DNA of 63,278 bases from Octopus bimaculoides (Eukaryota): positions 11,178,485 through 11,241,762 of the forward strand of contig NC_069009.1 of the NCBI RefSeq assembly GCF_001194135.2, read 5' to 3'. The notes beneath the pieces are model-generated. The model did not search any database and was not told where the DNA came from. It saw nothing but the letters and a program-made list of their open reading frames with translations. A program made the position numbers and the translations under genes. Below are positions 9,776-62,939 of this stretch, one piece after another. Within the stretch, counting starts at the first letter, position 1. Each line of letters opens with the position of its first letter.

Positions 9776-9847
9776 ATATGAGTTATGCTGGGAAGGTATA
9801 AGAATGCGCCATCCTCATAGTTTTGTATTCGGTTGTTTCTCAAATTT
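9776..9847 (-). CDS. LRR exon 22 (penultimate type): NLRNNRIQNYEDGAFLYLPSITH
   Basis: ttcttttttccAG, 72 nt (1 nt + 23 codons + 2 nt), GTatgt; open; paralogue of 28857-28928. Confidence 0.88.
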
Positions 9848-10344
9848 CTGGAAAAAAGAAGTAAGTATTCTGTAAGTTGAAATAGGTACAATTTATAAGT
9901 CTGGTTTCTCCGGTTAATATACTGTCTAAACTAACTGAATAAAAGCTCATGTTTACTGCACAGATGTTTATTTCTCTATGATTTTTCTGTCTATAGTTTG
10001 GGCATGGGTAGTTTCCATTAATCTAACTTCGATATCCTAACGGAAGAGAAAGTTTTCTCTGACAACCGAGTAACAAAAATGGAAGATGTTTAGTTATAAG
10101 AATAACAAAGCAACACCGAGACTTTGTTTTGTGCTCAATGTTGGTTTTACATAATTATGTACAAATATTATTTCCCATATAAACTCCAGTGGCAATATAA
10201 TGACAAACTTGAAAAAAATGAATCATGAATAATTAAAACACTTATCTTAACACCAATTATCAACTTTAAGAGACATATTCAAAATATATGTAAGAATTAA
10301 TGTTCAACTTTAAACTTTTGTAGAAAAAATATATATCTTTCATA

Positions 10345-11597
10345 TTAGGTCATCACGTCTGAAATTTGAAGAAAAGAAAAGAAGTTTGCTAATGTTTATA
10401 AATACAAGGAATAGTTTTATTCATCAAAGTATGCACCCATATTGTCAATACACTTTTGCCATTTACAGCCCGGAACTGTAAAAGCCTGGCAACCTAGATG
10501 CAATAAAATCCTGGAAGGCCTGTTTTACAGCATCGTCGGATTTAATATTTCTCCCAGTCAAAAAGCTATACAAATTCTAGAAGAAGTGGGAGTCAATGGG
10601 GGCAAGATCAGGTGAGTATGGTGGAAATGGAGAAGTTCCAACTCCAACTCCTGTAGTTTCGCCAATGTCATTTTTGTGATGTGTGATCTAGCCTTGTCTT
10701 GGAATAAGATAGTAGATCTGTTGACTAATCTAAGTAGTTTTTTTAATATGTTTCGGCATCATTTGGTCCAGTTGGCTGCAGTATATTTTAGCCATGATTG
10801 ATGAGCCAGGTTTAATGAAATCATTATGGATCACACCTGCGCCAGACCACCATACACACACCCTCACTTTCGTTTCATGAATTTTGCTATTCAGACTGTG
10901 TTTTGGTGATTCGTCTTTGTCCAACCATTGTGCTGAACGCCTACGGTTGTTGTATTGGATTCATTCTTCTTCATATGTTAAAATTGAATTTAAAAGTGAT
11001 CCATTTTTGTGACGAGAAAGTAGCATACTGCAGGCTAGGAAACGTTGCTGTTTCTGATTTTCATTGCGTTCGTGTGGAACCCACTTATCCACATTTTTCA
11101 CTTTATCAATTTGAACTAGGTGAGTCAATACTGTTTGCTTGCTAACACCAAACAACAACGATAATTCACAGGCACTTTAAGAGGGATCTGCCTCGACGGT
11201 GGCTTTCAGTTCGTCATTATCCACTTCTGTTTCGACCGCGTGGTTCGTTTGTGAGGTCAAATTCACCAGAACGAAATTTTGCAAACTAACTTGATACTGT
11301 CTGCTGTGTGATAACATTAGAATGCAATACTCCATTAATATTCCGAGCTGTCTGTGATGCTGTATTTCGAAGAAAGAACTCATTTCAAAACTGAACAAAT
11401 TTCCGACTTATCCATCCCTAAGCAAAAATAGCAGAAAACGATTAATAAATACTTCATGAATGGCAAAGAATAAAGAAATAGGTGTGTCACCTTTCTAACA
11501 AAGAATAGAGGTTGTCAAAATATAAGAATGGCGCAAAATGAGCAGCTGTCAAACTTTACCATATAGCTTTCTACAAATTTCATACTTGACGAACTAA
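10345..11597 (-). mobile_element. Full-length mariner element with disrupted transposase
   Basis: Ends tattaggtcatcacgtctgaaatttg and reverse complement tattagttcgtcaagtatgaaatttg (22/26, including TA); WVPHER, ILTYEE and KVRVCVWW motifs. The empty TA site is seen in the paralogous block at 29773. Confidence 0.93.
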
Positions 11598-13019
11598 TAG
11601 TATCAGTCCATAGACACTTGAATTCTACTTCGCGGGAAATGTTACTTTAAAATCTTATTTAATTTCTAGAGAATTGGGAAATGTGCAAAGTACTATGTAG
11701 TATCATGAAGTACCGTAAAGTACACTAGTTATACATGATGCATTTACTGATTCTGGATGCCAACGTAGTCAAAAAGTACTTTCAAATTAAATTCTAATTA
11801 TACAATGTTCAATACTGCTTTTGGTCAAAAACTTTGTGGCATTCGCTTAATGAAAAAAGTATGCATCATATAGAACTGACTAATGTCTACATTGTTTCAT
11901 TAACAGGGTGTTCTTCCAAACATCTTAACATAATAATGAAGCTTCTACTCTGACAATCATGATATAATATATATTTCATCATCAGCACAAGGTTCTGACT
12001 GCAAGAAAACATTCTGTTAATATTACAAATTTACGCGCATTGAAACACTTCACAGGGATTTTAAAATGTTAACATTTTATTTGCAGACTAGTTAAAGATG
12101 GCTGATGCTGGAATATTGATGATGTTTTAGTCGAGATATCATCCATGTTTGAAGAGTTCCGCTGTTGTTTTAGTACCAGTTACTTTGCTGTAGTTGCTGT
12201 GTAAGGCATCTCTTTCGTGAACAGAAGCCTTGCTGTATGTTTTTTTTCTTCTCGAAATGTAATCACCTACTTTCTGACAACGAGTCTCATGTCTCTCCTA
12301 ACATGTGAGACCAGAGTTATACCTGTAATATTTAGGAATTTCTCTACCTCTTCTTTAATCAATATACCTTCTTCTAACTCTTTGGGATGTTTTCCTATAT
12401 GTAAGGAAGCTCTGGAAAAGTATCTGCAGTAGTTCTGGAAGAACTTTCTTGAAAATCTTTAAAAGCATCACAAGAAAACAACCAGAGCCGTGACTAAGTT
12501 CACGTCTAAATAACATGTTTTGTTTCTTCTCTATGTGAACTCATCAGGCTTGCTTTATTTGTATATTTCCTAGTGAAGAATTGAAAGCATTTGGGAATTG
12601 TTAATTGAGTATTTCGCTTATCCTTCTGGCCATAAGCTATAACGCACTGAGGTAGATAATTTTGAAATGTCTATTTGTTTATAAGTTTTCATCTAATTTG
12701 GTTTCACTTTTTCGCTTTTTTCGTCACAGAAAAGACTCAGGGAGGGAGAGGGGGTGAGGTGTTAGACGTCGTCGACGTATATAGTTTGGAGTCTTAAGAC
12801 AAGAGGAATGTGATAGTGTTGTTGAAGAAAATTTTGCTGCTGCTGTTTGTGATGTTGATGTTTGTGATAATGATTCTGATGTGGATAATTATGAAGATAA
12901 TGACGTTGATTTTGTTGTTGACTTTCGTGCTGGTGATGATTCTAATGATGATGATAGAGAATAGATTAAAAGTTGATACACTCACATGCACTCGCTCATA
13001 TACTTAGACCGAAATATAT

Positions 13020-61050: not shown

Positions 61051-62048
61051 CTGTCAAATAAAATAGAATTTGTAAGGAACTGCTTGTAGAAAAAAACAAA
61101 GAAAAAGAAATCAGGAAGTTGTGATGTGAAAGAAATTATAAACATACGGACTGAAAAGTGTTTAAAATTTGGAAATATGGTGAGGTAAGGGGAAGAGAAT
61201 AAAAAGAAGACGGAAAAGAGGTAGAAAGAGAAGGTTGTGGTGGAGTAGAAAGAGAACAAAGAGAAGAAGGAAAAGAAAAAAAACAGAGCGAAGGACAAAT
61301 ACGACAAAAGCAACAATAAGCAAAATGTTAAGAGGTTGCGGAGTAACGAGAATGCGAAAGATAATAGCAAATGCAGTACGATGAAATGTAAAAGAAGGTA
61401 AAAAAGAGGAAAAGGCAATGAGGAAAGAAGGGAGCACAAGATGGGGGTAATAAAACAATTAAATCTGTAGAAGAATTAAATGAAGAGAGAGAAGAATGAA
61501 AGAAGGAAAAGAAGGAAAATAAAAGAAAGAAAATCAAGGGGAGCAACAGAAGAAGAAAAGGAAGAAGAAGAAGAAGAAGAAGAAGAAGAAGAAGAAGAAG
61601 AAGAAGAAGAAGAAGAAGAAGAAGAAGAAGAAGAAGAAGAATGAAGGGGAGAAGAAGGAGGAGAAGAAGCAGGAGGAGAAGAAGGAGGATGAGAAGAAGG
61701 AGGAAGAGGAGAAGAAGGAGGAAAAGTAGACGAAGAAAGAGAAGAAGACGAAGAAGGAGGAGGAGGTGAAGAATGAGGAGGAGAAAAGGCTAAAGGAGGA
61801 GAAGAACAACAACAACAGCAACGATAAGAACCACATTAAGTAGAAGAATTCGGAGGAAAGTTTTGGATGGTAATCAGTGCTGAGGGAGACATAAGCAGCC
61901 TACATGATATACAGACGGAATTGCACATATATTTTGGTACATTACCTTGCATATATCCTTATATAAAGTGACATATATGTATATATGTGTATATATATAT
62001 AGATATATATATATATATATATATGTATGTATGTATGTATGTATGTAT

Positions 62049-62112
62049 AGATAGATAGATAGATAGATAGATAGATAGATAGATAGATAGATAGATAGAT
62101 AGATAGATAGAT
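62049..62112. repeat. (GATA)n microsatellite within a TA/TATG compound tract
   Basis: Read directly. Confidence 0.95.
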
Positions 62113-62867
62113 ATGTGTGTGTGGGTGTATATATATATATATATATANNNNNNNNNNNNNNNNNNNNNNNNNNNNNNNNNNNNNNNNNNNNNNNNNNNNN
62201 NNNNNNNNNNNNNNNNNNNNNNNNNNNNNNNNNNNNNNNNNNNNNNNNNNNNNNNNNNNNNNNNNNNNNNNNNNNNNNNNNNNNNNNNNNNNNNNNNNNN
62301 NNNNNNNNNNNNNNNNNNNNNNNNNNNNNNNNNNNNNNNNNNNNNNNNNNNNNNNNNNNNNNNNNNNNNNNNNNNNNNNNNNNNNNNNNNNNNNNNNNNN
62401 NNNNNNNNNNNNNNNNNNNNNNNNNNNNNNNNNNNNNNNNNNNNNNNNNNNNNNNNNNNNNNNNNNNNNNNNNNNNNNNNNNNNNNNNNNATATATATAT
62501 ATATATATATATATATATACATGAACACGTTTACACTATTTTTTTACACTAACTGTCAAACACTCATATATTCCAAATACTAGGAATTGGCCCTCACTTA
62601 CATTCACAGACATTAACAAGCATACAAACTTTGAACAGAGGCTGATTTTACACATATACAGAAACATGTACATCCCCTGAACGATGGTGCTCTCATATTT
62701 CCCATAACTAAAAAATGGGCTGTCACTCACAAACGCAGATTAATAAAAGGTAAAACACATCTCTGGAAAGACCGGGGGGGGGAGCTTCAAGTGAAGGATG
62801 GAAAGATCTAACAGATTTAGAAATATATCGTTAATGAAATACAATAAAAACGATTGAATCAACTTAC

Positions 62868-62939
62868 AGTTCTTTTAGATTGGACAAATTTCGGAAGCTG
62901 CCTGCTGCGATTTCTTTGATATCATTATATGTCAAGTAT
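62868..62939 (-). CDS. LRR exon 1 (most 5' in the window): YLTYNDIKEIAAGSFRNLSNLKE
   Basis: gttgcAG, 72 nt, GTaagt; open. The intron module continues to the window edge, so the array probably extends further. Confidence 0.93.

Follow-up and report, generated by a model that had tools for sequence, protein, structure and literature searches.

A minus-strand array of 72-nt leucine-rich repeat exons in Octopus bimaculoides that may give rise to exon-skipped receptor forms

When every exon of a gene encodes one complete repeat, does the gene make a single long protein, or also shorter forms in which repeats that are distant in the gene become neighbors? This question is raised by a leucine-rich repeat (LRR) gene in Octopus bimaculoides (contig NC_069009.1, positions 11,178,485 to 11,241,762), in a stretch of 63,278 nucleotides (nt) of AT-rich, intron-rich eukaryotic DNA that was analysed whole and is called the window here. 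The gene is coded on the minus strand, and 22 of its exons, each exactly 72 nt long, span positions 9776-62939. An earlier note on this DNA, with the same outer limits for the array, had proposed that the introns cut the repeats inside their binding strands, and that joining non-adjacent exons would build strands absent from the linear order. We consider it probable (at about 0.6) that this is an LRR-ectodomain gene with a tandem-grown array, which makes a long product and a minority of skipped forms.

The array was recognized from its direct repeats, which form a 150-nt family of 17 copies spaced 0.4-8 kb apart. Each copy, read on the minus strand, consists of an acceptor (ending in ttttatgttccag), a 72-nt open frame and a donor (gtaagttg). 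We scanned both strands, together with 50 shuffles, for AG followed by 72 nt and GT with an open LRR-like frame, and obtained 24 minus-strand candidates against a single one from the plus strand; the shuffled sequences averaged 0.04. A stricter scan and a profile search (nhmmer, with a profile built from the units) agree on exactly 22 exon units, and the profile found no further or decayed LRR exon copies in the readable window sequence, long introns included.

All 22 exons encode 24 residues, or one LRR each, in the pattern x5-L-x-x-N-x-I-x-x-I-x-x-x-x-F-x-x-L-x-x-L-x2-x3, and their last two bases open the Leu codon that follows. Every exon has one leading base that completes a codon and two trailing bases; exon 19 ends in TT, exons 13 and 22 end in AT, and the other 19 exons end in CT. 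The 21 internal junctions and the join to the following LRRCT cap exon are all phase 2, after the second base of the L4 codon in L1-x-x-L4-x-L6-x-x-N9. The statement in the earlier note that each intron lies inside the second Leu of LxxL/xLxxN is correct for nearly all junctions, but the join of exon 13 to exon 14 reads Met (ATG) and that of exon 22 to the LRRCT exon reads Ile (ATT); the flanking residues it quoted (TH, TE, TR, RY and KK upstream; YLGY, ELSS and DLSG downstream) were all located in the exons. Twenty exons have the donor GTAAGT or GTGAGT and the other two have GTATGT, the acceptors are all pyrimidine-rich and end in AG, and none of the 22 exons contains a stop codon. The array thus has the equal exon length and the single intron phase at a fixed repeat position by which one-LRR-per-exon genes are recognized, and this design, with one frame-preserving repeat per exon, is already known from other repeat-protein genes. 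The features are listed below by window position; LRR exons for which no source is given were found by the exon scans and the profile, and a slash marks the exon end.

62868..62939, minus strand: LRR exon 1 of the window (YLTYNDIKEIAAGSFRNLSNLKE plus L); the gene extends upstream past the window
60979..61050, minus strand: LRR exon 2
53252..53323, minus strand: LRR exon 3
52569..52640, minus strand: LRR exon 4
50910..50981, minus strand: LRR exon 5
46149..46220, minus strand: LRR exon 6
43540..43611, minus strand: LRR exon 7
41246..41317, minus strand: LRR exon 8
36676..36747, minus strand: LRR exon 9
34058..34129, minus strand: LRR exon 10
32875..32946, minus strand: LRR exon 11
32515..32586, minus strand: LRR exon 12
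28857..28928, minus strand: LRR exon 13 ("terminal" type; sequence SLRNNRIQNFEDGVFLFLPSINY, end AT/GTATGT), paralogue of exon 22; exon scan
26738..26809, minus strand: LRR exon 14
25025..25096, minus strand: LRR exon 15, first of a recent tandem set (exons 15-20); exon scan and similarity
23966..24037, minus strand: LRR exon 16; exon scan and similarity
21359..21430, minus strand: LRR exon 17; exon scan and similarity
19199..19270, minus strand: LRR exon 18; exon scan and similarity
17699..17770, minus strand: LRR exon 19 (ends TT/, junction codon TTN); exon scan
16030..16101, minus strand: LRR exon 20; exon scan and similarity
14834..14905, minus strand: LRR exon 21
9776..9847, minus strand: LRR exon 22, terminal type (NLRNNRIQNYEDGAFLYLPSITH, ends AT/GTATGT); exon scan
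3522..3691, minus strand: LRRCT cap exon (I-DLRNNNGMNCGCHLPAFINYTNTMFNRKVSVEGGCQTDSSNNQSKVIPIMEYSECQ), phase 2 in and phase 1 out, the sole LRRCT in the window; homologue matches
28389..30769, minus strand: segmental duplicate with exon 13 and flanking intron, 73-78% identical to 9218-12668
within 15949..16029, at 15972-16004, minus strand: example of the intronic element (consensus TATTTCATTGACGATATATTTCTAAATNTGTAA), after exon 20

The window holds 15 assembly gaps, 14 of them inside the array span, all intronic and interrupting no exon; they fall in eight of the 21 introns (1, 2, 5, 13, 14, 16, 17 and 18). Since the frame is set by the exons, which are 72 nt long and phase 2 on both sides, the length of the gaps does not affect the reading frame, but exon number and adjacency remain dependent on them. 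Simple repeats of (GAA)n, (GTA)n or (TA)n border one or both sides of most gaps. Four gaps without simple-repeat flanks could conceal a 72-nt exon (22539-22889, 28286-28385, 55719-56231 and 57144-57917), and the array continues off the window upstream of exon 1, which sits 339 nt from the window edge, so that 22 exons is a lower bound. Identical 37-nt sequences (tacattcaaaataaatggaagtggagagacaagttac, 23371-23454) flank a gap of 10 N at 23408-23417, and this duplication suggests an unmerged contig overlap and not missing sequence.

How the array grew can be seen in exons 14-20, which are arranged in tandem units of 1.06-2.6 kb, with introns that are homologous too. Over all units, intron flanks of 60-70 nt are as similar to one another as the exons themselves. 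The recent tandem set, exons 15-20, has a mean nt identity of 79%. These patterns indicate growth by tandem duplication of a 72-nt exon together with its intron. We compared dN/dS (Nei-Gojobori) at scaffold positions (L6, N9, I11, I14, F19, L22 and L1) and at concave positions (x2, x3, x5, x7, x8 and x10). The scaffold values are 0.06 for all exons, 0.05 without exons 13 and 22, and 0.06 for exons 15-20, and the corresponding concave values are 1.19, 1.48 and 2.58; the estimates come from six codons and non-independent pairs, which counts against leaning on them, but the contrast is nevertheless large. Entropy per position is likewise highest at x7 (3.27 bits), x3 (3.04), x8 (2.94) and x5 (2.76), positions that flank the intron on both sides. 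The repeat scaffold (the L, N, I and F positions) is under strong purifying selection and the concave positions flanking the intron are diversified. We rejected a pseudogene, because there are no stops, the splice sites are intact and the scaffold dN/dS is 0.05; judged on its sequence, this is a live gene whose repeats are diversified on the predicted binding face.

To place the intron within the fold we used not the window protein but its paralogue P0002, whose locus in O. bimaculoides (L001) has matching 72-nt phase-2 exons. The AlphaFold (AF2) model of P0002 has pLDDT above 90 in its LRR region, and only the LRR and LRRCT part of the model is confident. The DSSP strands are three residues long (54-56, 78-80, 102-104 and so on) and correspond to x3-L4-x5, with the split Leu (55, 79, 103) in the center. 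The model thus bears out the proposal that the intron splits the strand of the binding face, and the intron of the window array is predicted to bisect the concave-face strand in the same way. All 231 joins of an exon i to a later exon j are in frame, with Leu (222), Ile (7) or Met (2) as the junction residue; because all exons are 72 nt long and all introns phase 2, whichever exons are combined, the frame is kept and the join carries a hydrophobic residue. These joins give 203 distinct L-x-x-L-x-L-x-x-N nonamers, 182 of which do not occur in the linear order, in agreement with the expectation that 231 exon pairs would make strands the linear order lacks. The combinatorial logic of "junctional diversity", the term used for this effect in the earlier note, is therefore sound, but the term is overstated, since each skip makes one hybrid strand and its residues are already present in the germline. 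With anchors of at least 40 nt upstream and at least 20 nt downstream, no two exons are within two mismatches of each other.

Which receptor this array belongs to can be judged from its relatives. The joined window product has 527 amino acids (aa), and its closest matches are all octopus proteins at 47-69% identity. They carry interchangeable automatic names, such as "toll-like receptor 5" for P0002 (O. bimaculoides) and "LRRC15-like" for P0006 (O. sinensis). In these homologues a last repeat (NRIxxYEDGxFLFLPSI) is followed by an LRRCT cap (DLRNN..M.CGCHLPA). The window has the same arrangement, with its cap exon (3522-3691) lying 6 kb downstream of exon 22, and exon 22 and the cap, with the terminal LRR and the CGCHLPA LRRCT feature, are 62-69% identical to P0001, P0002, P0121 and P0006. 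No family member exceeds 69% identity to the window cap, so the window gene may be an unannotated paralogue. The toll-like receptor name, which is automatic, was rejected on domain content, because the Pfam matches of P0001, P0002 and P0006 are all to LRR families, without a TIR domain, and there is none in the window; the automatic Slit name was rejected on the same ground.

A search with the cap and the Cys-rich region that follows it returned 39 members of the family, every one of them from a species of Octopus. "Adhesion GPCR G6-like" is the name of many of these proteins, and GPS (P0145) or 7tm_2 (P0149) matches are present in a few. Pfam found nothing beyond LRR in the C-terminal parts of the homologues. 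The Cys-rich (CC..NLC) exon after the LRRCT was not found in window positions 1-3521 by tblastn with P0001, P0002 and P0006, and it may lie beyond the window start. Ritschard 2019 (PMC6408891) described an octopus-specific expansion of adhesion GPCRs ("group 3"), in which some members have N-terminal LRRs, with co-localised clusters, positive selection and expression of members in axial nerve cord, suckers and skin. The G6-like names and the GPS and 7tm_2 matches among its members fit the window family to this expansion, and the two share the octopod lineage, LRR-bearing members and adhesion GPCR G6-like homologues. They differ in that the window encodes LRR and LRRCT only, and in that the paper gives no exon structure or isoforms.

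The array type is not confined to the window, as 72-nt phase-2 LRR exons like these are present at L001 and at a locus of O. sinensis (L002). In L001 (O. bimaculoides CM046629.1, positions 1-12520) the annotated start of P0002 is translated intron just upstream of an LRR exon, and seven further LRR exons belong to an "upstream gene" that ends 180 nt before this start. The annotation of L001 has probably split one array of at least 21 LRR exons into two gene models.

Are exons skipped in this family? The evidence consists of annotated isoforms of paralogous octopus genes, three genes in two species, and none of it comes from the window locus. In RefSeq, isoforms X1-X13 of the O. sinensis gene at L002 (VCDQ01004985.1) measure 409, 385, 361 or 337 aa, and at least seven isoforms (525, 501 and 477 aa) are annotated for a second O. 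sinensis gene. For an O. vulgaris gene the annotated lengths are 489, 465 and 441 aa; in all three genes the steps in length are 24 residues. The alternative forms of O. vulgaris are transcript-based, as PASA introduced them from assemblies of RNA-seq and Iso-Seq reads, and that annotation has a mean of 1.36 transcripts per gene (PMC10700109). The L002 isoforms map to whole exons, with joins that include E1 to g1 to g5, g2 to g5, g3 to g5, g5 to g7 and g9 to LRRCT. Exons g3 and g4 never occur in one isoform, and g10 and g11, although intact, are missing from all 13. At 11131-11204 of L002, exon g0 has a run of eight A and a 3' end that is out of frame in the assembly, and several RefSeq isoforms fuse its first half to the later half of g2 or g5.

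We favor a reading in which the window is the LRR-ectodomain part of an octopod-expanded receptor gene. The family layout would run from the LRR array through the terminal LRR and the LRRCT cap to the Cys-rich region and, in some members, on to GPS and 7TM. The gene would make a long product of about 22 LRRs and, as annotated for the paralogues, a minority of exon-skipped forms with fewer repeats and one hybrid beta-strand per skip. For the position of the intron we prefer inheritance through exon duplication, as for the LH-receptor/LGR, SLIT and NLR genes and the ROCO genes of brown algae; it would not require adaptation for junctional diversity. We put the chance that the window gene itself makes real non-adjacent joins above 1% at about even.

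The comparison with these systems sets the window in context. The closest match in design is found in the brown-algal ROCO/LRR-GTPase genes, which have 72 bp phase-2 one-LRR exons, tandem duplication and shuffling, positive selection on the concave side, and splice variants (Zambounis 2012; PMC11378527). This is a likeness in gene design and not in ancestry, as these genes belong to another kingdom and encode intracellular LRR-ROC-COR proteins without LRRCT. The LH-receptor/LGR and SLIT genes have one LRR per exon of about 72 bp, phase-2 introns and a recognised potential for in-frame skipping (Koo 1991 and Little 2002, as cited in PMC11378527 and PMC6642158). Their blocks hold fewer LRR exons, and their repeat number is conserved, whereas the window has at least 22 exons, recently expanded, with hypervariable concave residues. 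In NLR genes the LRR exons preserve the frame and their borders hold a constant position in the beta-sheet, which permits functional skipping (Hoss et al. 2019, PMC6642158), and therefore the idea of skipping at such borders is not new. The window resembles NLRP3 and its relatives (with their delta-exon-5 isoform; PMC6642158) in that the border is inside the beta-sheet, and removal of an NLR exon leaves a shorter, foldable solenoid with altered binding. The NLR proteins, however, are cytosolic, and their exons have 171 nt (two RI-type repeats, 28 + 29 aa) or a single repeat of 28 aa; the window has 72-nt exons with 24-aa typical-type repeats in an extracellular ectodomain with an LRRCT cap. 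Receptor diversity through LRR module number and hybrid modules also recalls lamprey VLR and a crab gene, "VLR2", reported with 10 isoforms by alternative splicing (PMC10045472). VLR genes differ in being assembled by somatic DNA copy-choice from cassettes without splice sites, and we rejected assembly of this type for the window, where each unit has canonical AG and GT borders, all units are collinear on the same strand and there is no hint of DNA rearrangement.

Besides the narrow base of the dN/dS estimates, several points weigh against the reading with skipped forms. An annotated product of the window locus is absent from a protein collection of 5.8 billion clusters, where the best matches are paralogues at 47-69% identity, and the tie to adhesion GPCRs holds at the family level only, with no GPS or 7TM in the window. 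The other points also favor the best-surviving alternative, which is constitutive splicing only. Here the gene would make one solenoid of at least 22 LRRs, the modular exons would be a relic of duplication, and the isoforms of the paralogues would be artefacts of near-identical repeats, caused by mis-mapping of reads, template switching in reverse transcription (RT) or PCR, or individuals with differing repeat numbers. The splice sites of all 22 window exons are near consensus and uniformly strong, as is typical of constitutive exons, and none of the 22 is a weak-splice-site outlier that would mark a skipped exon. The scaffold of every exon is under purifying selection, and the P0002 gene model is strictly linear, using each genomic LRR exon in its span in order. 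Four of the 13 O. sinensis isoforms carry mid-exon hybrid repeats (the head of g0 with the tail of g2 or g5) at a shared AAAGAAG/GT, so that RT template switching, cryptic splicing or recombinant haplotypes are possible sources and some annotated isoforms may be artefacts. We nevertheless regard constitutive splicing as the sole mode as doubtful. The 24-residue steps are clean in three genes and two species and come from two independent annotation pipelines, and random template switching predicts neither the disuse of g10 and g11 nor the mutual absence of g3 and g4 in L002. In addition, six protein records, of four different lengths, belong to the O. vulgaris gene, against that low mean number of transcripts in its annotation.

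A different explanation starts from exon 13, which has 82% nt identity to exon 22 and the same AT/GTATGT donor. It lies inside the duplicated 2.4-kb block (28389-30769, matching 9218-12668), the downstream edge of which abuts a gap of 100 N (28286-28385). In the four homologues that bear this exon type (P0001, P0002, P0121 and the gene of P0139) it is always the last LRR before the LRRCT. Since exon 13 copies the "last repeat" exon 22, the array may be composed of two cassettes, in which exons 1-13 and 14-22, each block with a terminal-type exon (13 or 22) at its end, would be alternative LRR domains sharing one LRRCT, or two genes joined by scaffolding across gaps. Exon 13 could join exon 14 (INY-M-DLSGN) or, skipping exons 14-22, the cap exon 25 kb downstream (PSINY-I-DLRNN), and the latter junction would match the sequence of P0001. 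The link between exons 13 and 14 also crosses two gaps (27434-27650 and 28286-28385) and a 635-nt contig, and annotated transcripts of L002 leap over intact LRR exons to the LRRCT. We think two cassettes unlikely, however, because no second LRRCT, LRRNT or signal-peptide exon was detected anywhere in the window, the sequence between the two gaps is an ordinary array intron with (GAA)n, and the join of exon 13 to 14 is in frame and keeps the LRR pattern. Moreover, the LRRCT exon leaves in phase 1 and cannot join exon 14, which needs phase 2.

Could skipping instead be regulated? Most LRR exons of the window and of L001 are followed, at about +26 to +58 from the 5' splice site, by a conserved element (consensus TATTTCATTGACGATATATTTCTAAATNTGTAA); in L001 it is found, for example, after the exons at 9743, 12447 and 30800. 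Over 43 exon units of these two paralogous loci its column identity is 0.63-0.65, compared with 0.58 at third-codon positions of the exons and 0.29 at random, and it may serve to regulate splicing. The plus strand also has long runs of (GAA)n, read as (UUC)n in the pre-mRNA, which occur in 12 of the 21 introns, including introns 1, 5, 7, 9, 10, 13, 14 and 16-19 (for example at 16786-16915, 18558-18735, 20090-20300 and 47300-48800), and these introns are mostly 62-75% pyrimidine. The runs cause most of the assembly gaps, and in the pre-mRNA they resemble PTB-type binding sequence. In its widest form the proposal would be that octopods use regulated combinatorial skipping of one-LRR exons for diversity in surface recognition, as an RNA-level counterpart of Dscam1 and the clustered protocadherins. 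Each skip would alter the length of the solenoid and make a hybrid concave strand, regulation would act through the conserved intronic element and the long runs of (UUC)n, and the long-range join of exon 13 to the LRRCT would be a choice between two alternative LRR domains. We consider this whole proposal, the domain choice at exon 13 included, quite improbable. Least tenable is a Dscam-like choice of LRR exons through base pairing of docking and selector sequences in the introns, which is very improbable despite the conserved element of about 30 nt after most 5' splice sites in both loci (0.63-0.65 against 0.58), because the elements are direct repeats in which we found no complementarity to the upstream flanks, and because the duplex energies of downstream and upstream flanks (-14.8 ± 4.3 kcal/mol) do not differ from those of shuffled controls (-13.9 ± 4.0 kcal/mol), on which ground mutually exclusive splicing of the Dscam type was rejected.

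Some other elements were observed in the window. The intron that separates exon 22 from the LRRCT exon contains three adjacent open reading frames (ORFs) on the plus strand (7194-8089), which resemble by eye a decayed transposase of the mariner/Tc1 type. On the minus strand, at 334-723, a 129-aa ORF with a Cys-rich CxxC...CxC stretch is possibly a transposon-derived fragment, and near-identical ORFs of 80-107 aa at 1325-1648 (plus) and 2253-2498 (minus) form an inverted duplicate.

We found no description of LRR exon skipping in cephalopods in the searchable literature, and how far isoforms are diversified within the octopus family may be new. If the skipping is not real, the window contains an ordinary, though long, exon-duplication array, and the swarms of octopus isoforms in RefSeq would be a caution about artefacts driven by repeats. 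If it is real and regulated, this octopus receptor family could show many binding surfaces from few genes. To our knowledge, cephalopods are without alternative promoters in the style of the clustered protocadherins (Pcdh) and without Dscam-style hypervariability. Regulated skipping, if true, would bear on how cephalopods diversify cell recognition.

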